Positions 1,393 to 59,612 of a stretch of DNA of 64,000 nucleotides are shown piece by piece; positions within the stretch are counted from its first letter, which is position 1, and every line of letters starts with the position of its first letter. Below the pieces are notes generated by a model. It was not told where the DNA came from and did no database searches. It saw nothing but the letters and a program-made list of their open reading frames with translations. The translations under genes were made by a program, and so were the position numbers. The DNA comes from Octopus sinensis (lineage: Eukaryota), in contig NC_043002.1 in the NCBI RefSeq assembly GCF_006345805.1, positions 38,378,001 to 38,442,000 on the forward strand, written 5' to 3'.

Positions 1393-4300
1393 AGTTTCTT
1401 TATTGGCCACACAGAGCTGCACACAGATGGGACAAGTTACAAGGTAGAGCTTTTCTTTTGGGGGATGAAAAAAAACCAAAAACAAAAGAAACAAAAAAAA
1501 GGGGGTGGCGTAGGTTTTCGATCAAGAGGGATCGTAAAAGGGAAGAAAAGAACAAAAAATAAATAAATAAATAAAATAAAAAAGAAAAAAAGAAAAAAAA
1601 GAAAAGGAAAAGGAACAAAAGAGAAGAGAAATGAAAAAAAGAAGAAAAAGGGGAAAAAAAGGGGAAAGGAAAAAAACGATCAATAGGGATCGTGTTATGA
1701 TATATGGTGTAAAGCAAGTAAGGTTTATCCGTGGGAAGAAAAGCCTACGAAAAAGACCACGTTAACCTTGGTCAATATTGTTATATGTTACCACATTTGT
1801 TTGCAAGTGGGCAACCCTCTGTTTTCAATTTCTGGGTTCATAGGATTATGCTCAAGGTGGCTTCATCATTCATACGTGCCATCCTTGCTACATTCACCCA
1901 TCTTTTTTTTAAACATTCGCTAGACAAAACTTGCCTCTCTACTCTCACTTTCCTTTTCAAGTGGTACTTGAATAAGTTGATGAGAGATTGACCAGAGAGG
2001 TAAGTGTTTGTCTCCAATCCTTTCAATCGCGTCCACCAGATACATTCTTTCGCCATAGCCACAAGGATGATGAAAATAGATCTTCCTTCCCGTTTGAAGG
2101 AAGGAGGCGTGACAGTATTGACGATAGACTCAGCTGATAAACCGACTCGTCCCACACGTGACAGCAGTTGTTCGACATAAGTCCACAGGTCGGAAATTGT
2201 TGGACACTGCACGAGTGCGTGCAGAACGGTTTCGTCGCTCTGACCGCATCTCGGGCAGGTCGGCCACGTGTTTCTCGAGCCGTGTCTGTAGAGTTTATCC
2301 CGAACGGGTAGCGCTTCTCGGTAGCACTGCCAGGCCAGGGATCTCTGGAAGTTGTCCATGGGTCCTGGCCCGAAAGTCGTCCTGAACAGGCGGGTCAGGT
2401 ACTCCTCGTCGACGTCCAGGTTCGCCTCGAGCTCGTCGTCGTACCTCCCCTCCACTAATCCCCTATAGAATGCTTTGGTTGTGTTGAAGTCACTCAAGGT
2501 CGACCCAGGACGGCAGAGTTGCTTGAGAGCAACGCGACACTCGCGGTGCCATTCGCCCTTCCTCGGCCTCTTTTTGATCCACGACTGCAGTTTGGTCATG
2601 GAGACGAGCTGCGGGAAAGTGTGCCTCACAAACGGCGACCACACCTGTTCACCGTCGTCTACGAAGAGCCTGAGATGTCGCAGTCTCAGCGCGTGTCTGC
2701 GCATCATCAACCACGGCATGCCCAGTCCTCCTTTTAACGGGTGTTGACAGCAAATGGATCGCCTGACCATTGGGACGCATCCTTTCCACACGAAGCGAAA
2801 GAGAATGCGTTGTAGTTTGGTGATGGTAGGTCGGGACAAGGCACGACGGTCAGGCGGTAGTAGATGACTGACGTGATGTACGTGTTCGCCACCTCCGCCC
2901 GACCTTTTAGGGACAGTTTCCTCTCGGCCCATTGCCGGGCGAGAGTGACCACCCTACTCGTTATCTCGTTCCAGTTTTTCTCCACTTGGTGGTCCGGACC
3001 AAACCAGATCCCGCGCAACTCAACCGGGCCGTCGGTCCAGCGTTCCACGACGGAGGAACTGGCGGACGGCATGGGCTTGCTTCTCCAGGTGCCTAGTCGC
3101 AAGCCCACTGACTTTTCCCGGTTGATTTTTGCTCGTGTCACCGCTTCGTAGTTTTTCAGTGTCTCGCTGACCTGCTCGATGTGCTCGTGGCTAGACACAA
3201 TGACGGTGACGTCGTCCGCGTATGCAGACACGCTCGTCCCGCATTCCCAGTTCTCGCGGGATGCGCCTCAAAGTTGCCAGCTTCCGCAATAATGGCTCGA
3301 GAGTCAATACGTATAGAAGCGACGAGAGGGGGCATCCCTGACGGACCGAACGTGCGATGTCGAAGGGTCTCGATAGATGTCCATTCACGCGAATTACCGA
3401 ACGGATGCCTCTGTACAAAGCGGCTATCCAGCCGCGGAAGACGGGACCGAAGCCAGCCGCTCTGAGGACCGCCTCCAAGCATCGATGGTCCACCCTATCG
3501 AAAGCTTTCGATTGATCCAAATTGATCAGCGCCCCACCCATGCCAGGTTCGTTAACTACCCTGTCTATGATGTAGCGCATCAGGTGGAGGTTGTCATGGA
3601 TGGTCCGGCCCGGCACGGCGCATGTTTGCGCCTTGTCGACCAGTTTCTCGATGACAAGCGCCAACCTCTTGGCTAGCACCTTGGCCAAAATGTTCAAGTC
3701 TGCATTAAGCAGAGTGATGGGCCTAAAGTTATCTATTACATTTCCCTTGTTTAGATCTTTCTTCAGCAGTGTTACGGCTCCTCGGCTCACAAAACCAGGA
3801 ATGCTCCCGTTTTGCTGCCAGTTGCAGTACACCGCCGCCAAGAGATCTCCAAACAAGTCTGGCATACAATTGTAAAGCTCGTAAGGTAGACCATCCAAAC
3901 CCGGTGATTTGTCCCTCGAGCATTCTGCCATCGCGTCCTGCACTTCCACCGCCGTGATGGCACCTTCGCAGCACCCTGCCTTTCTTGTCGAGAGTCGTGG
4001 TAGGCTATGTAGGTAGGCACTGAAGTCCACCCTACGTTCTTGCCCTCCACTTGTCCCGAACAGTCGGGCAAAATGCTGCTGAAAGGCCTCACACATTTTA
4101 CTTGGCTCGAGCAATTCGCGCCCCTGTTCATCTACCAGGGACCGAATGGTGGCTTTGTTGCCCTGTTGCGCCTCTGCCACCCGGGCCTCTCTCGCGCTCC
4201 AACACCTTCGTTCCTTAGAGCACGCATCCTAGCTCTGACAGCACATCCTTCGTGTTTGGCGTTGAAGTGTTGGTCGAGGGTCAACCTCGCCCCCAAAACG

Positions 4301-4953
4301 TCGGATGCGATGCCGCTTCTAATTGCCTCTTCTAGCTTCTTAACTAGCTCACCCTCTACTCTATTTCTATCTATGGCTAGTGCTTTGCTGTACCTAATCG
4401 CTTCTGCTTTTACTGCTCTCTTGAGGGCAAACCACCATTCGTTGTTGATGATGGCTCCCGTCAAAGCCCTCTTTACTAGTGTGCTAATCCGGTTTCTGAA
4501 AACCTGTCTCGATGGGAAAGACGCGTTTAGTTTCCAGTATCCAGGACCCTGCCTAAGTGTCTTACCTAAGTCTAGCGTACATGTCACAAGTTTGTGATCC
4601 GTGTAGCTGACTATGTGGAATTGTGGACATCCTATGCTATCTCTGTCTACTGTCCTACACAGTATCCTATCTAGATACGATCTCGACGACCGGATGCGGT
4701 TGCTCCATGTCAACGTTGGCGCATTCGGGTGATCTAGTCGGAACCTGTCAGACAGTTGAAAGAGTCTGAGCAGGTCTCTGAGGCATTTACATCCCCGTCT
4801 ATTCCTATCTCTACCCACGTAGTCTACATGCGTGTCCAAGGTAGCATTCCAATCCCCCACTAAGAGTAAAGGACGAGACGTTCCCAAGAATACTTCTAGA
4901 CGTTGAAAGAGATCCGCCCGACCTGTTAAGGGCGGTGCGTAGATTGATACGAG
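1393..4953 (-). mobile_element. 5'-truncated Tx1-clade (L1 superfamily) non-LTR retrotransposon inserted in a (GATA)n/(TATC)n tract
   Basis: Minus-strand ORF pieces give an APE endonuclease (SIYAP..., LLLVGDWNATLD, SYLDRIL, TDHKLV, GYWKLN), an RT (KSPGLDGLPYE, FRPITLLNAD, LDQSKAFDRV, VRQGCPLS, AYADDVTV) and a C-terminal zf-RVT CCHC (CPRCGQSDETVLHALVQC). The 3' UTR is pyrimidine-rich, with AATAAA at 1404-1399 running directly into TATCTATC. GATA repeats flank both sides. Confidence 0.93.
1838..4953 (-). pseudogene. Frameshifted ORF2 (EN-RT-zinc knuckle) of the Tx1-like element, in four overlapping pieces (4132-4953, 3191-4180, 2734-3231, 1838-2932)
   Basis: Consecutive ORF-track segments in different frames carry successive EN, RT and CCHC motifs. 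The N-terminus of the EN is missing because the reading frame runs into the microsatellite. Confidence 0.9.

Positions 4954-5010
<57 letters not shown>
4954..5010. repeat. (GATA)n microsatellite at the 5' junction of the Tx1 element; a short remainder lies at 1380-1392
   Basis: Direct reading of agat repeats. Confidence 0.97.
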
Positions 5011-5011
<1 letters not shown>

Positions 5012-6691
5012 TCCATAATATCCGCTATCTAAAACGGTGATCTAAGGGAAAATTGTCTGCTGTGTTCCGCTGATAGAGTGACTACCTACAAGCTCCCCCG
5101 ATTAATACACGCAAGTAAACATACATTATATGCGTATGTGTTTCAGTATGTGTGTGTGTGTGTAGGTGTGTCTGTGTGTGCGCCCGCGCATAAAATAGTT
5201 TTATTAATCATTAAATATTGTCAATTATTTCATTCTTGTGTATTTAATTCTTGTATTTAATTCTTGTGGCGTCACGGAAGAGCTCCACAGCACTTGATTC
5301 TGAAGGAAACAATAAATGTGGTAACTTTAATGTTAACTACAATGAGAAGTAATAGTTCTAAGCTACATCAACGAGTCAATCGGTTTGATTCTAGTTTAAT
5401 ACATTTTTAATAGCTGCCTTTACTTTACAGTCACGTCAAAATATAAAAATAGCATTTTTTAAAAATTCCATACTGCATATGTGGAAAAGTACAGCTAAAA
5501 ACAACAATTCGATATTCTTTTTAACAAAAATAAATCAAAGAAGATAATAAACATTACAAAATGTTCAATATGAATAAGATTTTATTCGATGGTCTTCCAT
5601 ATGTTGCAAATATATTTGCATTTAGTCCAAAACACTGAAAAAAAAATTTTTTCCGCATATATCCGAAGTTTCAGTTAGTTTACAAGCCAAAGCGCATTGA
5701 ATCTTAAAATTCGGTTTTGTTGGAAAAGATATAAAGAGTGGCGTAACTAAAAATAAGACAGCGATTAGCTGTGAATCACAGTTTCGAATTTTACATATTT
5801 TGATCTAAAGATAGAAAATGGAATCTAATATCTTTTATGTGTTATCTTTTACTGCTTACATTTAAAATTTTATATTATTATTATTATTATAATTTGCACT
5901 GAAAGAGAAACAGAGTTTCAATAATTTGAATATATTTACTAACTTGTTTAAAATACTAAAAAATATTTTTTTCTATTTGCCTTCAACATACTAATACCTG
6001 AATTCTTTGTAAAAGAGAAAAATCTGAACTGATAGGAAATACACATAAACTTACTTCTGTATTAATACAGAGTAAAACAGAGTAGTGCGTATAAGTAATT
6101 GCTTATTTCAGTGCATTATTAAAATGAGGCATCTTAGAAGAAAAACAATATGGAATATTCCTCTTAAAACCACTTAAATTAGATTATTATATAAGACGGA
6201 ATGTTTCAATAACTCCAACATATTTCATTCCATCATTATACTGAGCTTCTGGGAGATAATAAAATGTGTTAAAATCCAGCATAAACTACGGGATAGATTT
6301 GTTTTCAAAGGTATATGCATGTATAAATAAACATATATGTGTGCGTGGTGGTGTTATATACATATGTGTGTGAGTGTGTGTTTGTGAATGTATGTGTGTG
6401 TGTGTGTGTGAATGTATGTGTTTGTCTTTGTAAGTGTGTGGGTGTGTGTGTGTATATATATACATACATATGCAAGCACATGCTCACGCGCACACGATAG
6501 TGATGAACGGAATGGAACATGGAAGTGATTAATAGAATTGGAGATTTAAACATGATACACTATTCGTCAGCCATCTAGGTAAGAATCAATTGATTTTCAG
6601 CGCCTTGAATGTCCAGAATTTAAAATATATGTGCACGTACACAAACTTATACGCGTGTTTGCATATGTACAAACACACGCAAACATATATG

Positions 6692-7040
<349 letters not shown>

Positions 7041-9878: not shown

Positions 9879-10692
<814 letters not shown>

Positions 10693-10726
10693 AATATTAT
10701 ATATGTTTATTTATATAAATAACATG

Positions 10727-11220
10727 TGAAGGCGCATGGCTCAGTGGATAGAGCGTCCAGCTTACGATCGTGAGGTTGTGAGCTCGAATCTCGGAAAGGG
10801 CTGCGTGCTGTGTTCTTGAGCAAGACACTTTATCTCACCTTGCTCCAGTTCACACAGCTGTAGAAATGAGTTGCGACGTCACTGGTGCCAAGCTGTATCA
10901 GCCCTTGGATAACACTGGTGGCGTGGAGAGGGGAGGCCGGTATGCATGGGCGACTGCTGGTCTTCCACAAACAACCTTGCCCGGACTTGTGCGAAAACAC
11001 CTAAAGAAAACACCTAAAGCTCCACAAGACTCCGATAGGGAGTGGTTTCGATCCCTGCTGTAGTCTTTTGCCACAACTTTGTCTTACTCTTTCTTCTGTT
11101 GACCTGAATGCTTAGCCAGAGGGGTGGCGTTATTTGAAGGCTAAAACGATGCGAAGCGCATTGTGACCAGCGATGAGTAGCAAATCTGACAGCCTAGTCG
11201 GTCACGGTGATCACGGTGAT
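10727..11220 (+). mobile_element. tRNA-derived SINE, family A (CORE-like central block), near full length
   Basis: A-box tggctcagtgg, B-box-like gagctcgaatc, and central gtgttcttgagcaagacactttatctcac resembling the CORE domain. The 3' tail runs into a microsatellite. Confidence 0.85.
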
Positions 11221-11265
11221 ACATACACATACACACACACACACATATATATATATATGTATAAA

Positions 11266-11342
<77 letters not shown>

Positions 11343-11347
<5 letters not shown>

Positions 11348-11725
11348 CTCTATATAAACGGCAGTTTGTCTGTGTGTGTGTCTGTGTGTCTGTTAGGTTG
11401 TACCCTCACCCTGACCACGGCTTTCAACCGATTCTGATGAAACTTGATACACACATAGCCCAATGTCATAATTCAAAACTAACGCAGCGAAAATTTTGAA
11501 AAGTTCCCCCAGTTCTGAAAAAAATCGATAAATTCGACATGGGGTCGAGAATCAGAAACACAAACCAAAGACTGTCTAGGGGACGCAACTCGACCTTTTT
11601 AACTCTAAAAAAAATTTACCATAATTTTTTTCCCATTTTTTTGCTATTTTTTGGCTATAACTCTCTAAAAATGCTTTATAGTTATTTCCCTTACAAACCC
11701 GAGCAACGCCGGGTGATACTGCTAG
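11343..11725 (+). mobile_element. Non-autonomous Helitron (Lep1/HINE-like architecture)
   Basis: A|TC 5' end, (GTCT/GT)n tract, acggctttcaaccgattctgatgaaacttg block, subterminal hairpin acccg-agcaacgc-cgggt (11697-11714), CTAG|T 3' end, and no TSD. Confidence 0.85.
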
Positions 11726-11726
11726 T

Positions 11727-12312
11727 ATTATATAAAAGGGCTTAGTAAAATAAATTACTTTGCCGCATACTGAACTCATTAGAAATAGCAGCTAAAAAAC
11801 TTTTTTAAAGCTATTTCTAATACTTAAAGAAAATCTCTCTCATATATAGTGTTTGCTTAATTCAACTCACAAAAGTTTGGGGGTAAGGACATCGAAAAAT
11901 CAAATGCTAAGGTTATTTGAGAACGTACGTTTCAAGATTAGTCAAAAACAACACTTCTATCATCAGCTCAGAAATTCCTTGGTTTGGATTTGGAAACACT
12001 GAAAATAAGAACATACCCAAGGGTATGTTCTTATTTTCAGTGTTTCCAAATCCAAACCAAGGAATTTCTGAGCTGATGATAGAAGTGTTGTTTTTGACTA
12101 ATCTTGAAACGTACGTTCTCAAATAACCTTAGCATTTGATTTTTCGATGTCCTTACCCCCAAACTTTTGTGAGTTGAATTAAGCAAACACTATATATGAG
12201 AGAGATTTTCTTTAAGTATTAGAAATAGCTTTAAAAAAGTTTTTTAGCTGCTATTTCTAATGAGTTCAGTATGCGGCAAAGTAATTTATTTTACTAAGCC
12301 CTTTTATATAAT
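11727..12312. repeat. Perfect 586-bp palindrome: 292-bp arms (11727-12018 and 12021-12312) with a 2-nt loop (aa)
   Basis: Arms read as exact reverse complements. The ORF track shows mirror ORFs 11917-12126(+) and 11913-12122(-) that differ only at the loop codon. Confidence 0.97.
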
Positions 12313-12405
12313 GTAATAATTTGAATTCGCCTTGAATGGTCCCTTTGCATACTGAACACTTGGTGAAATTGATTAATAATTAATTAATTTTGCCCTCAAT
12401 TGTTG

Positions 12406-12436
<31 letters not shown>

Positions 12437-12825
12437 TCACTGAGCAAATGAACTTACTGTGCAATTATATCTAGAAAAAGTGCATGTGTGTATATGTGCG
12501 TGTGTATGTGCGTGTTTGTGTATGTGTGTGTATGGATAAAAAATAGATATATAAATAGATAGATAGAAAATAATAGATAGGGACATCGTTGTTAACTGAC
12601 ATGTATGCACTGAGATTATACTAAGATGCTAACTAGTTACTTTTTAGAAACCACACCTAATTATAATTTATTTTAGTGTTAAGCCTTTGAACTTGAAGCT
12701 GAAATCTTTTGGCATAAGAATGGTAAATATGTGGAAAAAGTAAAACGCAAAATAAACACGGAAGATAGAGAAGGAAGTGAAACTGAAGGAACGTTAAGAA
12801 ATAAAAACAAAGCAAAATATATACT

Positions 12826-13016
12826 ATTTACTCTTTACTCCTTTACTTGTTTCAGTCATTTGACTGTGGCCATGCTGCAGCACCGCCTTTAGTCGAGCAA
12901 ATCGACTCCAGGATTTATTCTTCGGAAGCCTAGTACTTATTACGCTAAGTTACGGGGACGTAAACACACCAGCATCGGTTGTCAAGCGATGTTGGAGGGA
13001 CAAACGCAGATACACA

Positions 13017-13080
<64 letters not shown>

Positions 13081-13258
13081 TATATATACATATATACGAC
13101 GGGCTTCTTTCAGTTTCCGTCTACCAAATCCACTCACAAGGCTTTGGTCGGCCCGAGGCTATAGTAGAAGACACTTGCCCAAGGTGCCACACAGTGGGAA
13201 TGAACCCGGCACCATGTGGTTGGTAAGCAAGCTACTTACCACACCGCTACTCCTACGC
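12826..13258 (-). mobile_element. tRNA-derived SINE, family B, with internal (TA)/(TG) microsatellite
   Basis: Minus-strand head ggcgtaggagtagcggtgtggtaag...ccgggttcattccc, then caccttgggcaagtgtcttc. Tail is (gagtaaa)-like repeats. Confidence 0.88.
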
Positions 13259-13740
13259 CAAAATAGGAATTTCGACTCTTTCTTTTGTTGTCGTTCTTTT
13301 TGCTTCCTACAATTATTAATATTATTTTTATTTCTTTTAAAATTGTTGCTGATCTTGTTGCTCATTACTATAGCCGAACATGTTTTTCTTTCCTTTCCAT
13401 TGGGTCATATATGTTAATATTATTATTTGATCTTGTTGAGTTGACCAGAATTGTGATGGAATAGTCGACTACCTTCCGTTATTCATCCCCGGGCCAACTT
13501 CGGAACAATAATCTCAACTAAACCAATATTTCAAAATATATTCCATATTTTCCTCTTTGTTGCGTCGTCTGCAAAATGGAAAAGGGGTAATTTGGAAGTG
13601 GAAACTTGCTCTTAGACAAAAATAATCTCAATGCACAGTACCACCACCGTATCAAACACTAATATCAGTAACAGAAGCATTTATTACAATAGCAGCAACA
13701 GCAACCAAGTCCACACTTACTCAAGGAAGCAGAACATACC

Positions 13741-13976
13741 TATTTCTTTATTACTCACAAGGGGCTAAACATAGAGGGGACAAACAAGGACAGACAAAGG
13801 TATTAAGTCCATTACATCGACCCCAGTGCCTAACGGGTACTTTATTTATCGACCCGAAAGGATGAAAGGCAAAGTCGACCTCGGCAGAATTTGAACTCAG
13901 AATGTAACGGCAGACGAAATACCGCTAAGCACCTCGCCCGACGTCCTAACGATTCTACCAGCTCGCCGCCTTGAGT
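13741..13976 (-). mobile_element. SINE family C, full length, with 11-bp TSD
   Basis: Head aaggcggcgagctggtagaatcgttag, B-box-like gagttcaaattc. TSD cagaacatacc at 13730-13740 and 13977-13987. Confidence 0.9.
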
Positions 13977-24619: not shown

Positions 24620-24918
24620 TATCGGAATCCACCTAGAAAGTTCTCTTGCGAAATACAAGCCTGGGCAAAGTTGTTTATGGAAGACCAGCAATCGCCTAGG
24701 CATATCAGCCTCCCCTCTCCATGCTACTGTTAGAAAGGTAAAGCCGATACAGCTTGGCATCAGTGACATCGCAACTCATTTCTACAGCTTCGTGAACTGC
24801 AGCAGCGTGAAATAAAGTGTATTTCTCAAGACAGAGAGCAAGAGACAGCCTAGTCCGGGAATCGAACTCACTACCTCCTGATCGTGAGCCCGACGCGCTA
24901 ACCACTGAGTCATGTGCT
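24620..24918 (-). mobile_element. SINE family A copy
   Basis: Reverse complement of the 10727 head and body (gactcagtggttagcgcgtcgggctcacgatc...gagttcgattccc). Confidence 0.85.
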
Positions 24919-25867
24919 TTTACAATAGTGCAATCGATGGTAAATTTTAAGATAAATTTCAGTAGATGCAGCATCCCAATAACAAGCATATATGTGAAAT
25001 ATCATTTCTAATTTGGTAAAATAACTACTATATCTATTATATAAGCACCACTCGACTTTGCATAGACCACAAACTCATTAATAAATACACAGATAATTTC
25101 AGGTATAGATGCGCTGGAAATCATGTCCGTTCAATCAGTAACAATTATCTCATTAGTTGTGCAACCGTATTATGAATATATCCGATTTCTCCATTGAAAG
25201 TGCATTGAAAAAATATCGGTGTGACTTAATAAGGTACCTTCAACTTTTCAAAAGAAATACAGATCTAATATAACGCGTTATAACTCATTACATCTATATA
25301 GATCCTATGAGTTGTAACTCATTACTGACTGGTACATTATCTTTCAGATATTCAGAAAACAAATACTGGAAAATTTATGATAATAACATGAAGATAGATT
25401 GCTTTGTCAACTAGTCAAATGGCTGCCAACTCTATCTAAGAGAGAACATACATTTACATGAGTGAAGAAGTCACGTGTGCTAAACTCAAACTGTCGATAA
25501 TTGAATACAAAGTTTGAAAGGTAAAATGAAATTAGTGTACATGTTCACGATACTAAAACATATATTTTATCAAAACTAAAAGTAGTTTACATTTTTCAAA
25601 ATGTCATCTTACAAATACTTTTATAAAATTTATAGAATATTATTTTGTATATTATTATAGTATATTAAAACAAGAATCTAGACACCTATCGCAAGATGTC
25701 ATTAACTAACACTAAATCGTCAGCGTAAGTAGGTGGTTGATCATATTGCACTCAAGTTATATTTGAGAAACATGGTTATCTCTCTCTTTTTCTCTCTCTA
25801 TCTCTTTCTCTCTCCCTCTTTCTTACTCTCATTCTCACCCTCTCCTTTTGTATACATACATACATAT

Positions 25868-29769: not shown

Positions 29770-30000
29770 CTCCTCGAGTCATAGGTTCATAAGGCCGGTC
29801 TTCTGGATTTTGTGGCGTATATATTACCCTTCTAGGCGGGACATCGGTTTCTCACAGGATTGCTCATTCATGCCAGCTGAGTGGACTGGAGCAACGTGAA
29901 ATGAAATGTTTTACTCAAGAACACAATGCATCGCCCGGTCTTAGAATCGAAACTACGATCTTGAAATCATGAGTGTATCACCACCTTAAGCACTAATGTA
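29770..30000 (-). mobile_element. SINE family A-related copy
   Basis: Reverse complement similar to 26158-26390. Confidence 0.75.
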
Positions 30001-34891: not shown

Positions 34892-35360
34892 GAAGGCACA
34901 TGGCTCAGTGGGTAAAGCGTCAGACGTATAATTACGAAGTAGTCAGTTCCATTTCCGTACCGGGCTGTATGTTGCTTTGTGTCTATATTTCACGTTGTTA
35001 GGGCGGTGAACTGGCAGAAACGTTAGCGCGCCGGGCGAAATGCTTACCAGTATTTCGTCTGTCGTTACGTTCTGAGTTCAAATTCCGCCGAGGTCGACTT
35101 TGCCTTTCATCATTTCGGAGTCGATAAATAAAGTACCAGTTTCACACTGGGGTCGATGTAATCGACTTAATCCCTTTGTCTGTCCTTGTTTGGCCTCTCC
35201 AGGTTTAGCCCCTTGTGGGTAGTAAAGAAATATATATTTCATGTTGTTCCAGCTCACTCAGCTGAAGAAATGAGTTGCAACGTCACTAGTGTCAAGCTAT
35301 TTTGTCCTTTGCCTTACCCTTGGATAACATCGGTGGTATGGAGAGGGGAGGTTGGTGCCA
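34892..35360 (+). mobile_element. SINE family A copy interrupted by a family C SINE
   Basis: Head at 34892-34999. The body resumes at 35233 (ccagctcactcagctgaagaaatgagttgcaacgtcac). Confidence 0.8.
35000..35232 (+). mobile_element. SINE family C nested in a family A SINE, with 16-bp TSD
   Basis: TSD tatatttca(c/t)gttgtt at 34984-34999 and 35233-35248. Confidence 0.9.
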
Positions 35361-38751: not shown

Positions 38752-38900
38752 TCATTCTTGTGAGTGGATTTGGTAGACGGAAACTGAAAGAAGCCCGTCG
38801 TATATATGTATATATATATGTATGTTTTTGTGTGTCTTGACAACCGATGCTGGTGTGTTTACGTCCCCGTAACTTAGTGGTTCAGCAAAAGTACACCATC
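38752..38900 (+). mobile_element. Internal fragment of SINE family B
   Basis: cttgtgagtggatttggtagacggaaactgaaagaagcccgtcgtatata...gacaaccgatgctggtgtgtttacgtccccgtaacttag. Confidence 0.85.
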
Positions 38901-42183: not shown

Positions 42184-42212
<29 letters not shown>

Positions 42213-42215
<3 letters not shown>

Positions 42216-42580
42216 CTCTTTTACTCTTTTACTTGTTTCAGTCATTTGACTGAGGCCATACTGGAGCACCGCCTTTAAAAATATCAGTGCCTCGGGTATG
42301 TATATGAATGTATGCATATATCTATATGTCTAGACTTTTGTGTCTTTGCGTTTGTGTTTGACTCGCCCACCATTTGATACCGGTGTTAGTTTGTTTATCT
42401 CCCTTTAACATAGCAGTTCGTCATAACAGAACGATAGGAAAAGTTCGAGGCTTTAATACATCAAATACTGGGTTAGGATTACGATTAGGGTTGGGGCCGA
42501 TTAATGCGATTTAAGCCCTTCAAAGCAGTGCTCCAGCGTGGCCACAGCCCAATGACTGAGACAAGTAAACGATAAAAGAA
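42213..42580. mobile_element. Two oppositely oriented 3' fragments of SINE family B (42213-42280 minus, 42340-42580 plus)
   Basis: ttacttgtttcagtcatttgactg.ggccat.ctggagcaccgcc, and the reverse-oriented gtgctccagcgtggccacag.ccaatgactgagacaagtaa. Confidence 0.7.
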
Positions 42581-43354
42581 AAGATAGTTAATCAGATCTT
42601 AAGTTCAGTAGCAATCACTCTATAGAATATTGGATGTTCTATACCGATAATCATTGGAAATGTATTCGATTGAATAATTGAAATTTTTCTATAACGCTAA
42701 ATATCTCGTTCAATTTTCTTCTCATATTCTTGCTTTCATCTCATCGACTTTAATCTGCCAGAGGAAGTAAATATATATGCTATGTTATTTATTAATTCAG
42801 TCCGAATCTTTAGATTTATGGTTGGGATAGCATATAATTCATATATGCCGGTCTCTATTAAAACAGTGTTACATGAGATTTTAAGTTGTACTTATTTAGG
42901 TATATGCTTTCCAGATTTCAGTTCCAACCAACCAAGCTACATATATTCTTATAAAATTTTGAAAAGAAGCCAACAGTAGAAATGCTTTTTTCTTTTAAAT
43001 TTCATAAATGATAAATGTAACAGCAAAGTGCTGAAACTCACCTAATTGTTGCTTACCATCTTAGTCAGTGGCATTAAATGTCAGCTTATCGCAAGTAACT
43101 TTCCCAGAAAATAGAAGTGTTTGCTTTCCATACCTGCTTTGTGAACTAATGCGCAAATAATTGTTTTACACAGAGACACACTGACATTTCTAGCAACGGA
43201 TAAGAATTCCTGGTTTACAAGTTAAGTAAAAAGAAATCCTCTCCAACTTGTAGTTTAGCTCCTGATTAGTCAGAAATATTATGATCAATGGCAAATTAGA
43301 GACGACTGTTTTATCTTGTTTTTATAGTGTTTAAGTAACACCATGTTATCTGCT

Positions 43355-43712
43355 GTAGGCGCATGGCTCAATGGTTAGAGTCTCATGCTTACAGTCGAGA
43401 GGTAGAGAGCCCGATTTCCGGACCGGGCAGTGTGTTGCACTCTGTCTTAAGCAAGATACCTTATTTCACGTCGTTCCAGTTCACTCGGCTGTAAAAATGA
43501 GTTGAGCTGCGACGTCACTAGTGCCAAGCTCTTTCGGGCTTTGTCTTTCCTATGGATAAGATCGGTGGCATTGAGAAGGGAAGCTGGTATGCATGGGGGG
43601 GGGCGACTGCTGGTCTTCCATAAACAACTATACCCGGATTGGTGCTTCGGAGGGAAACCTTCTGGGTGCATTGCATTGTCATTCATGACCGAAAGGGTCT
43701 TTACCCTTTTTT
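43355..43712 (+). mobile_element. SINE family A copy with an alternative 3' end
   Basis: ggcgcatggctcaatggttagag...cttaagcaagatacc...gttgagctgcgacgtcactagtgccaagct...ggtcttccataaacaac. Confidence 0.85.
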
Positions 43713-56734: not shown

Positions 56735-59612
56735 CTATCTATCTATCTATCTATATATCTATATATATATATATATCTATATATATATATATATAATATA
56801 TATATATATATATGTATATGTCTATCTACCTATCTATATATATCTATATAAACTTAGATAAACTTAGATATGTTTCGACCAAAGATTGGTCCAGGCCATG
56901 TCTAATTTAATAGCACCACCTGATAGGATTATTCGAATCCTGTTTAAGTCAAGTTTTATGTTTAAGTCAAGTTTTGTTCAAGTAGTGAGTTCTTGTTGGG
57001 TGAGTTGTATCCAATTATGGGTGGCTTATCTGGTATTCTTTGAAGGAATCTATCCAGACTCTGTTTAAAGTTGATGGGATCCTTTTCCTCTTTGATCTCC
57101 CTCGGGACAATGTTAAATAGGGTAGGGCCTGTTGAGGAAAAGAAATTATGTTGCAGTGTACATGTATGTTGTGATCTAGAATTGGGCAGGGGACGTATAG
57201 CCCGTGGTCCAAGTCTTGGATGAACCTTGAAGCTAATGTTTAGGTCGTTTGGGCAAAGTTGGCGGTATATTTTCCACATCGTACAAATGATGTAACGCTC
57301 ACGGCGACGCTGGAGGGAGTAAAGTTTCAAGGCTTTAAGGCGATCCCAATAATCGAGAGCAGCCATGCCTTCAATTTGTTTAGTGAGTGCCCTCTGGGGT
57401 GACTCAATTCTGGAGATGTTTTGTTTTGTGTGAGGAGACAACAGTGGGCAGCAGTATTCAAGGTGTGGCCGTACAAAGGAGGAAAGAAGTGGTATGATGA
57501 TACCTTGTTCTCTGGACCGGAAAGTTCTTAAGATCCAGGAACTCATCCTACGAGCTATATCAACCTTCTTGTTGATGTGTGCACTCCAACTGAGATCGTC
57601 ATCAACAATTACACCCAGGTCTCTGATATTGTTAGAGGCTGTGAGCGGTTCCCCTGAAGGAAGAGAGTATGGTTGTTTTAGTGAGGAATTTCTTCCAAAA
57701 TGCATCAGCTCAAATTTTCCCTCATTCAGTTGCATTTTGTTTCTGTCTGCCCATTGACTCACAGCATATAGATCAGACTGGAGTTGAGTTCGGTCTGCTT
57801 CTTCATTGACGATTTGCTGGAGCTTAGTGTCATCAGCAAATATTTTCACTTTGCAGTAATGTACGACACTGGAAAGGTCGTTTACGTAAATTATGAAGAG
57901 TAGCGGACCCAAAACAGTTCCCTGGGGAACACCGCTGGTGACTTTTGCTGGGTTTGAGTGGACTACATCAACTACAACATGTTGTGTTCTATTCGCCAGG
58001 AAATACTTAATCCAGTGTAGAACTTTTCCACGGATTCCAACGTTTGCCAATTTTGAGAGTAGGATGTTATGGTCTACCCTGTCGAACGCTTTACTGAAGT
58101 CAAGATTATGACGTCAGAGTTCGAACCTGTTCCCAAGGCTTTGAGTACATCTTCAATGTGGTGTAAGAGCTGTGTTAGACAGTCCCTGCCACAGCGAAAG
58201 CCATGCTGATTTGTATTTAGGAGTTTGTGGGTCTCCAGGAAGTCAGCTATCCTTGATCTTAACACTCTTTCAAACACTTTAATGATGTGGGAGGTGAGTG
58301 AGATTGAGCGATAGTTGACTGCGAGGGATCTGTTTCCCTGTTTGAAAAACGGGATGACCGACTGGGATAGAAACTGTATCGGTATATAACCTGCGTCTAA
58401 CGAATTTCTCCAGAGGTTAGTCAGAGGGACTGCAAGTTGGTATCTACATTCCTTCAGTAGACTAGCGGGAAATCTATCAGGGCCTACAGCAGAGTAATGT
58501 TTGTCTCATTTATTACTGCTACGATGTCGGTGGCAGTGAAGGTTATGTCTGAGATTTTGTGTTGGGAGTCAACTTCGTTCGTTTCCCTTACGTCAATATC
58601 AGTGGGAACACTAAAGACAGAGCAGTATTGTTTCTGCAGTATTTCTGCCATTTCTTTAGCATCGTGTTGGGGAATGCCGTTATCATCAATCAATGGCCCA
58701 ATGGGTGAGACAGTGGTTCTATGCTTATTTGCACAAGAATAGAACACTTTTGGGTTCTGTTTGATGTTTTTGATTACCCATTGTTCCTCCACAGCTCTTT
58801 GATTTTCAATGGAGGTTTTCATGTTGGTCTGCAGATGAAGTTTTCCAGCTCTAGTCTTTTCATTGTTGTTGAATGTGGATGTTGTGTGTGGGAATATTTT
58901 AATTGGTTGATTTTTTTGTTGAGTCTTTTGATGCGCCTGATGAGTGTTTTTTTCTTTTTAGGGAGCTGGTTTCTGTTTGTGTTAGTAGATTTCTTGGGAG
59001 CGTGTTTAGAGCATGTATAGGTGACAATGTTTTCAAAGTGCTGCCACGCGGTCTCAATATGAGAGGAATTTAGAGTAAAAGACCAGTCGATGGAAGACAG
59101 ATCCTTTCTGATTGTTCCCCAGTCCGCTTTGTGGAAGTTTATGTTATCAAATGGGTGCCATGGAGTGGGATTGGCTGGTTTGGTTTTTATATGTGGGGAA
59201 TTAAGATTGCAGAGTACCATGTCGTGGTCTGAGAGGAGAGTTTTTTCGACTGAAATACTGTGAACGTAGCTAGAGTGATTGGTCAATACCAGATCCAAGA
59301 TCGTTTTATTCTGTCTCGTTGGTTCAAGCACTAGCTGAGTCAGGAAATATTCATCCATCAGATTAAAGAGCAGTTCTGCTGCTGCTCTATCTGATGTAGA
59401 GCACTTGCCTGACAAATAAAAAGAAAAAGAGAAATTAGACTAAGCACAGATTGAGAAAAGCTTTAAAAAATTAATGAAATAGACATTGTTCAACACAAAC
59501 AAATGACAGAATACAAATATCAGAAACTTATTAGGTTGCTACTTAAAAACATATATATATATAAACACGATTTATTCGCGATCAGAGTTGTTCGAAAATC
59601 GAGGTACTACTG
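56658..59612. mobile_element. Tigger/pogo-like TIR pair (TA TSD) enclosing a microsatellite and the CR1 LINE
   Basis: TA|cagtagtacctcggtttgcaaacgcctatgatc ... gatcagagttgttcgaaaatcgaggtactactg|TA. The terminal 13 bp are identical. Confidence 0.72.
56851..59413 (-). mobile_element. 5'-truncated CR1-clade LINE with frameshifted ORF2
   Basis: EN C-terminus (FLTQLVLEPTRQNKTILDLVLTN, LSDHDMV), RT (NQHGFR.GRDCLTQLL, DFSKAFDRVDH, SGVPQGTVLGPLLFIIYVNDL, IFADDTKL) and the CR1-typical tail FVRPHLEYC...LYSLQRRRER. Pieces at 58819-59415, 58484-58822, 58074-58277 and 56962-58050. Confidence 0.93.

Follow-up and report, generated by a model that had tools for sequence, protein, structure and literature searches.

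A perfect 586-bp palindrome one nucleotide beyond a Helitron 3′ end in Octopus sinensis, tentatively read as a recent template-switch inverted duplication

Introduction

In humans, palindromic AT-rich repeats (PATRRs) such as PATRR11 and PATRR22 combine a strongly AT-rich core with the polymorphism and translocation activity by which they are defined. Palindromes that span the whole element and measure a few hundred base pairs are a common architecture of MITEs in invertebrate genomes. Many junctions formed by template switching or MMBIR carry some microhomology, which is frequent in them and not obligatory. Template-switch mutations (TSMs) yield a perfect hairpin in a single event (PMC10710096, PMC5453318), and replication-error inversions are seen at lengths typical of Okazaki fragments and resection tracts, a range that embraces 292 nt (PMC13334657). 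Inverted junctions also arise as chimeras: fold-back chimeric reads are symmetric about the midpoint of the read (PMC12338684), and the palindromes formed in whole-genome amplification (WGA) duplicate whole molecules (PMC6218980). As to Helitrons, HUH nucleases cleave DNA to leave a 3′-OH and a 5′-phosphotyrosine, and Helraiser favours AT-rich targets, above all on the 3′ flank of its insertions (PMC4778049).

Here, a 64-kb stretch of the Octopus sinensis genome (hereafter the window, 64,000 nt in full) was analysed, in which a perfect palindrome begins one nucleotide past the 3′ end of a Helitron. In size and form the palindrome is PATRR-like, being spacerless, nearly perfect and several hundred base pairs long. 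It also has the adjacency of a template-switch product, with an inverted copy beside its source, identical arms and a short spacer. We tentatively favour, from the sequence, the reading that the structure truly exists and arose very recently as an inverted duplication made in situ by template switching, and speculate that the duplication may have been bounded by a nick at the Helitron 3′ end. The palindrome is regarded as a structural mutation rather than a gene, and has no demonstrated function.

Results

The palindrome occupies positions 11727-12312 (its parts and those of the neighbouring Helitron are given on the plus strand). When the reverse complement of the right arm was compared with the left, the two 292-nt arms differed at no position, and the perfect 586-bp palindrome with a 2-nt loop described in an earlier, sequence-only reading of this DNA was thereby confirmed. 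The left arm (11727-12018; 292 nt, 31% GC) resembles the DNA around it, and the outermost 9-11 nt are the degenerate tail of an upstream (AT)n array. On the symmetry axis lies a spacer of 2 nt, AA (12019-12020), which is not self-complementary. The right arm (12021-12312) is the exact reverse complement of the left and is followed by the unrelated sequence GTAATAATTTGAATTC. Symmetry breaks directly beyond the arms, where T11726 stands opposite G12313, and over the adjoining 100 nt on either side complementarity is 28%, as expected at random. The GC content of the arms is 31% against 35% for the window, with a local profile of 23-37% that is indistinguishable from that of the flanks.

Folded as single-stranded DNA, the 586 nt formed a single uninterrupted hairpin of −345 kcal/mol, whereas dinucleotide shuffles gave −49 ± 4.8 kcal/mol (z = −62). 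Among the long inverted repeats of the 64-kb window it alone is not based on microsatellite sequence. The other inverted repeats of the window had earlier been described as diverged, and the 24 long ones listed, all within microsatellite-rich stretches, were indeed only 72-89% complementary. Each arm also contains a nested imperfect hairpin of 44 nt (11778-11821, mirrored at 12218-12261), with stems of 12 bp and 7 bp and an AGC/AA internal loop; in the left arm it was detected at 84% over 45 nt (E = 2e-6). This hairpin may perhaps be the trace of a smaller inverted-repeat event that affected this DNA earlier.

Immediately to the left lies a non-autonomous Helitron of 384 bp (11342-11725), between host A11341 and host T11726. 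It was inserted in the last A|T, at the 3′ end, of an (AT)n microsatellite of about 100 bp (11245-11341), and the pre-insertion junction, at which the (AT)n array abutted the left arm, reads ...ATATATA|T ATTATATAAAAGGG. The element starts with 5′-TCTCTCTCTATATAAACGG and continues with a (GT)n-like microsatellite, a AACCGATTCTGA block, and a 3′ hairpin with CTAG. Its 5′ end, a|TCTCTCTCTATATAAACGGCAGTTTGTCTG at 11342, corresponds to a|TCTATATATATAAAGAA...GTTTGTTTG in the full-length relatives L046 and L073, and the 5′-TC terminus is homologous to a|TCTATATATATAAAG... in the same two loci. Past this start, a G/T microsatellite precedes the AACCGATTCTGA...ACTTG..CACA block that is common to L083 and L078.

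The subterminal hairpin of the Helitron, CCCG-A-GC-AAC-GC-CGGG (11698-11713, read from the sequence), is followed by 8 nt and then by CTAG, the element ending 12 nt past the hairpin. The 3′ terminus thus has the form CCCGAGCAACGCCGGG-N8-CTAG|T, and CTAG together with the host T of the A|T target (11722-11726) holds the expected RepHel cleavage site, G|T. The left flank of the palindrome terminates in ...AAACCCGAGCAACGCCGGGTGATACTGCTAG|T. Of the canonical Helitron features listed in the Helraiser paper (PMC4778049), all but a RepHel gene are present, namely 5′-TC, a 3′ CTRR (here CTAG), the subterminal GC hairpin, the A|T target and the absence of a target-site duplication (TSD). Neither an ORF nor a RepHel transposase gene was found in the 384 bp, so the element is a non-autonomous derivative. 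The window contains no other Helitron 3′ terminus of this type than the one at 11722-11725, and a second copy of the Helitron region was not found within it.

The Helitron terminus was searched for in a metagenome contig collection with the pattern CGAGCAACGCCGGG-N5-9-CTAG, which gave at least 120 loci (L001-L120), across which the motif is invariant by construction. After removal of duplicates there were 105 loci among the matches listed, and 62 of the 105 had AT-rich downstream sequence. The gap between hairpin and CTAG was 8 nt, as in the window, in 51 of these 62 listed AT-rich matches, and a T directly followed CTAG in 60. The listed GC-rich matches, presumably bacterial chance occurrences, had neither the 8-nt-gap bias nor the T bias. 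One family could be followed through 14 independent copies, in which ungapped pairwise identity was 0.97 from the motif through CTAG, compared with 0.75 for the 50 nt preceding the motif and 0.30 for positions +2 to +50. The fall from 0.97 to 0.30 at CTAG shows that CTAG is the true boundary of the element. This collapse of family identity and the canonical features bear out the earlier claim of a Helitron 3′ end beside the palindrome. With CTAG, the true terminus, at 11722-11725 and the arm running from 11727, the claim that the left arm starts 1 nt after it also holds.

The form CC-CGAGCAACGCCGGG-N8-CTAG|T was common to many otherwise unrelated families of non-autonomous Helitrons in eukaryote-derived metagenome contigs. 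In JAAUXU01 (JAAUXU010... contigs, L002-L106) one Helitron family was represented by at least 14 copies, with tandem CGAGATCAGCTTCGAGG-type repeats in the 3′ region; this DNA is probably that of the host, a eukaryote, in a 'metagenome' record.

A near-spacerless palindrome starting near CTAG occurred at 0 of the 105 unique loci listed (114 kb of downstream sequence), and the best inverted repeat near the listed CTAG ends had arms of 31 nt and lay 138 nt away. The possibility of a recurrent association between Helitron and palindrome was therefore dropped: Helitrons of this type do not regularly give rise to such a structure.

The downstream flanks of the listed loci also carried a signal of their own. 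Positions +7 to +11 past CTAG were enriched for A-T-A-A-A (40, 42, 37, 38 and 37 of the 62 AT-rich matches listed, respectively), with positions +2 to +6 near background in the same 62. Exact ATAAA at +7 was present in 8 of 60 flanks among the matches listed, whereas control offsets averaged 0.2 of 60, an enrichment of about 40-fold. It is a weak but clear flank motif which looks like a spaced target-site preference, and it agrees with the AT-rich preference of Helraiser on the 3′ side (PMC4778049). At the octopus locus this 3′-flank motif, ATAAA, is found at 11732-11736, which is +7 to +11 past CTAG and falls within the left arm. The arm's outer end thus most likely already formed the flank at the time of the Helitron insertion, as the native context of the Helitron. 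The same position counts against a palindromic element that landed later between CTAGT and GTAAT. Two orders of events remain: either the palindrome, or at least its left arm, preceded the Helitron, or the left arm came first, the Helitron second and the inverted duplication last. An older and longer palindrome split by the Helitron was rejected, since the pre-insertion (AT)n array with T11726 pairs with the right flank as T:G, then two matches, then failure.

By random placement, either outer boundary of the palindrome would fall within ±1 nt of the sole Helitron 3′ end of this type in the window with a probability of about 1e-4. Had the Helitron instead arrived after the palindrome and simply settled at some A|T of the (AT)n array or its tail, the chance that it took the last site before the arm is a few percent.

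If the palindrome was there first, it could have been a young palindromic MITE of the fold-back type, beside which the Helitron later inserted at an A|T one base outside the terminus. Octopus genomes are annotated with 65 MITE families (PMC13282606), and Helitrons favour AT-rich DNA, mostly on the 3′ side, which makes insertion by an AT-rich terminus unsurprising (PMC4778049). A self-complementary duplication of AT, TA or TATA could furthermore hide inside the ends of the palindrome. Whole-element palindromes are also a common MITE architecture in invertebrates. A MITE nevertheless seems unlikely to us: blastn with a word size of 7 found no other copy or fragment of the left arm within 64 kb of very repeat-rich sequence, and neither a terminal motif of a known superfamily nor a recognisable TIR motif was seen. 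Outside the palindrome the only candidate TSD is the dinucleotide GT at 12313-12314, which matches GT at 11725-11726, has a 1/16 probability by chance and, as a 2-bp TSD, would take in the last base of the Helitron. The absence of any mismatch between the arms would demand an insertion that was extremely recent and yet older than that of the Helitron. The arms also lack tandem sub-repeats, TRF having called no array between 11344 and 12409; a Drosophila-FB-type element was rejected on this ground, and the fold-back element proposed in the sequence-only reading, if taken in that sense, is not supported.

A search for direct repetition around the palindrome was likewise negative. A direct repeat between left arm and right flank (GCATACTGAAC) was no better than shuffled controls. 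A small inverted triplication was rejected as well, there being no third direct copy and no local alignment of arm against flank that was better than shuffles.

The wider surroundings are rich in repeats. A tRNA-like SINE (GGCGCATGGCTCAGTGG...GGTTGTGAGCTCGAATCTC head) lies at 10726-11215 between two (AT)n arrays, and at least five more copies or fragments of it occur in the window at 73-90% identity (24655-24924, 43354-43645, 6820-6937, 35235-35351 and 29874-29925). ARAGORN called no tRNA in the window, this SINE included. Just upstream of the first (AT)n array is a tandem repeat with a 100-bp unit (10318-10510; 1.9 copies, 81% match). To the right of the palindrome, the first approximately 500 bp have no other copy in the window; from there on the flank is a mosaic of dispersed repeats (12817-12891, 12945-12986, 13074-13244 and 13740-13972), copies of which are found for example at 42203-42277 (89%), 38836-38877 (100% over 42 nt) and 35002-35232 (88%). 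Two degraded LINEs are present on the minus strand, one at 1838-5016 with Exo_endo_phos, RVT_1 and zf-RVT domains and one at 56962-59415 with Exo_endo_phos_2 and RVT_1 domains. The closest database proteins to the LINE reverse transcriptase of the window were 53% identical, or 69% over a partial match, and the best partial match traces to a 934-bp contig of GCA_024449705.1. By exact look-up, none of 20 ORFs from the window, including those spanning the axis and the junctions, was found in a collection of 15 billion proteins. An exact-pattern scan of viral and prokaryotic genome collections with the palindrome axis and two arm segments returned 0 matches.

That the right arm might be absent from the organism was considered against the same structural data. 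It could stem from chimeric inverted molecules or from mis-traversal of the assembly graph, with fold-back ligation, whole-genome-amplification chimeras and missed adapters as the sources named. Perfect identity and a near-zero spacer mark artefactual inverted junctions too. About 0.6% of ONT genomic reads are of the fold-back kind (PMC12338684), and in WGA libraries palindromes are found in 12-48% of reads and inverted duplications enter assemblies (PMC6218980). Long perfect palindromes are in addition described as intrinsically unstable in vivo (PMC7999016). A fold-back read, however, has the structure A-B-B′-A′, whereas B′ here leads into unrelated sequence, and no reverse-complemented Helitron follows it. 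An artefact would therefore need two independent false junctions, one of them 1 nt from the Helitron end. No adapter-like sequence could be read at the axis spacer (12019-12020), the palindrome is internal to a gap-free stretch of 64 kb with no similar structure elsewhere in it, and the arms agree across all homopolymer runs (A6, T6 and G5), which argues for an accurate and well-covered consensus. The unrelated flanks would thus make an artefact less likely without eliminating it. The earlier warning of an artefact consequently retains some force, with a small but real probability, although its simplest form, a fold-back read, is a poor fit to two unrelated flanks.

Discussion

The layout of the locus may be written A-T-B-AA-B′-C, where B stands in its native context, B′ is perfect, nothing has visibly been lost on either side and there is no clear TSD. 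This is the product expected of a template switch during DNA synthesis. Of the origins put forward in the sequence-only reading, a recent fold-back duplication seems to fit best, given the native ATAAA flank, the lack of a clear TSD and the lack of copies in the window. The favoured event may be depicted as follows: The 292 bp of host DNA directly 3′ of the Helitron would have been copied once, in reverse-complement orientation, beside the source. The growing strand would have quit its template at about 12020 and copied the same-sense strand back to 11727; candidates for this second template are the lagging-strand template, a displaced strand and the nascent strand. The growing strand would then have rejoined the original template at 12313, leaving a near-spacerless perfect palindrome.

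We infer a young age from the arms. Zero differences at 292 paired sites put their divergence below about 1% by the rule of three, as against 11-27% difference (73-89% identity) for the interspersed repeats of the window. If the octopus calibration applies, in which a JC distance of 0.09 corresponds to about 25 My (PMC13282606), the arms would be younger than about 1.4 My, or else have been homogenised; arm-to-arm homogenisation would break such a divergence clock. Two observations speak against a template switch. Microhomology at the switch points (12020/12021 and 12312/12313) amounts to 0-1 nt and is in effect absent, unlike at many template-switch and MMBIR junctions, and the documented mutations are far shorter than an arm of 292 nt.

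The coincidence of the left boundary with a cleavage site raises the question of whether nicks made by HUH nucleases at transposon ends can seed inverted duplications. The sequence-only reading had suggested snap-back synthesis primed at a Helitron nick. In its classical form, fold-back or snap-back at the nick, this was rejected, as the axis would then sit at the nick and yet is 292 nt away; the suggestion can stand only with the nick at the outer end of the arm, where it would provide the primer, the 5′ end of the strand being copied, or both. By HUH chemistry, the host top strand would emerge from cleavage at CTAG|T with its 5′-T, at 11726, capped by protein. RepHel would accordingly nick the top strand at CTAG|T and stay covalently bound to the 5′-T, and synthesis from the 3′-OH of the G would displace about 294 nt of the host top strand. 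The growing end would next jump to the displaced strand, copy it back and run off at 11727, after which the strand would rejoin the original template. A run-off stop at 11727 lies one base before the adducted T, which matches the observed boundary. Nicking followed by run-off would account for the boundary at +2, the native left arm, the missing TSD and the perfect arms together, and if true it would be a new route by which rolling-circle transposons make palindromes and potentially hairpin-RNA genes. That the palindrome is a footprint of Helitron enzymology in this manner is nonetheless quite unlikely in our estimation. Alternatively, the Helitron may have been directed in its integration to the junction of single strand and duplex at the base of an extruded cruciform.

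From its sequence, the palindrome is expected to extrude hairpins or cruciforms and hence to be unstable. A transcript of it would form about 290 bp of perfect dsRNA. One could imagine a selected hairpin-RNA locus whose product supplies Dicer (endo-siRNAs) or serves ADAR as substrate or sponge, with arm identity kept by selection or by arm-to-arm conversion. The predicted hairpin is extremely stable, a property compatible with any origin. We consider such a locus very improbable: Rfam at gathering thresholds gave no match over the whole window, the palindrome is situated amid debris of SINEs, LINEs, Helitron and microsatellites, and youth is a simpler explanation of the perfect pairing. The sole upstream element of Pol III type, the tRNA-like SINE at about 10726-11200, is moreover cut off from the palindrome by several T-runs.

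If the structure is real, it is a natural perfect palindrome of several hundred base pairs observed shortly after it arose, while its source and both junctions are still intact. Palindromes of this kind are seldom preserved, owing to their instability and to the difficulty of sequencing them, and they are the raw material for fragile sites, fold-back rearrangements and new hairpin-RNA genes. If it is an artefact, it would still be a useful flag for assembly quality control.

A comparison with known systems places the palindrome as follows. Fold-back reads and WGA palindromes (PMC12338684, PMC6218980) likewise have a perfect inverted junction with little or no spacer; they are symmetric over the entire molecule, whereas the palindrome of the window is short, internal and set between two unrelated flanks. 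Palindromic MITEs and Foldback (FB) elements share with it a whole unit that is an inverted repeat of a few hundred base pairs, but the copies in the window, the clear TSD, the FB-type sub-repeats and the terminal motif are absent here. The neighbouring element has the 5′-TC, 3′-CTAG, GC hairpin, A|T target and lack of TSD of the canonical Helitron Helraiser (PMC4778049), from which it differs in having no RepHel and in the microsatellite near its 5′ end. The human PATRRs (reviewed in PMC7999016) are likewise nearly perfect, spacerless, AT-rich, non-coding and cruciform-prone palindromes of several hundred base pairs; their core is strongly AT-rich, whereas the arms of the window palindrome have 23-37% GC throughout, the same as the surroundings.

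Closer in mechanism are two products of replication errors. SIT (PMC13334657) is of similar size, on the Okazaki-fragment and nucleosome scale of about 150-300 nt, and has been proposed to form likewise by a fold-back or strand switch with a subsequent return to the template at a nick. It is organised as DUP/INV/DUP with a spacer of about 30 bp, in contrast to the 2-nt spacer and the lack of a third direct copy here. The TSMs described by Loytynoja & Goldman (2017, PMC5453318) and Monttinen et al. (2023, PMC10710096) measure tens of nucleotides (28-83 in the examples considered; up to about 83 in PMC10710096) compared with 292 nt per arm, and unlike them the palindrome, judged without the ancestral allele, adds sequence without replacing any. 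With these TSMs it shares a perfect stem, a short loop, unique flanks and no TSD, as well as an inverted copy of adjacent sequence that lies beside its source.
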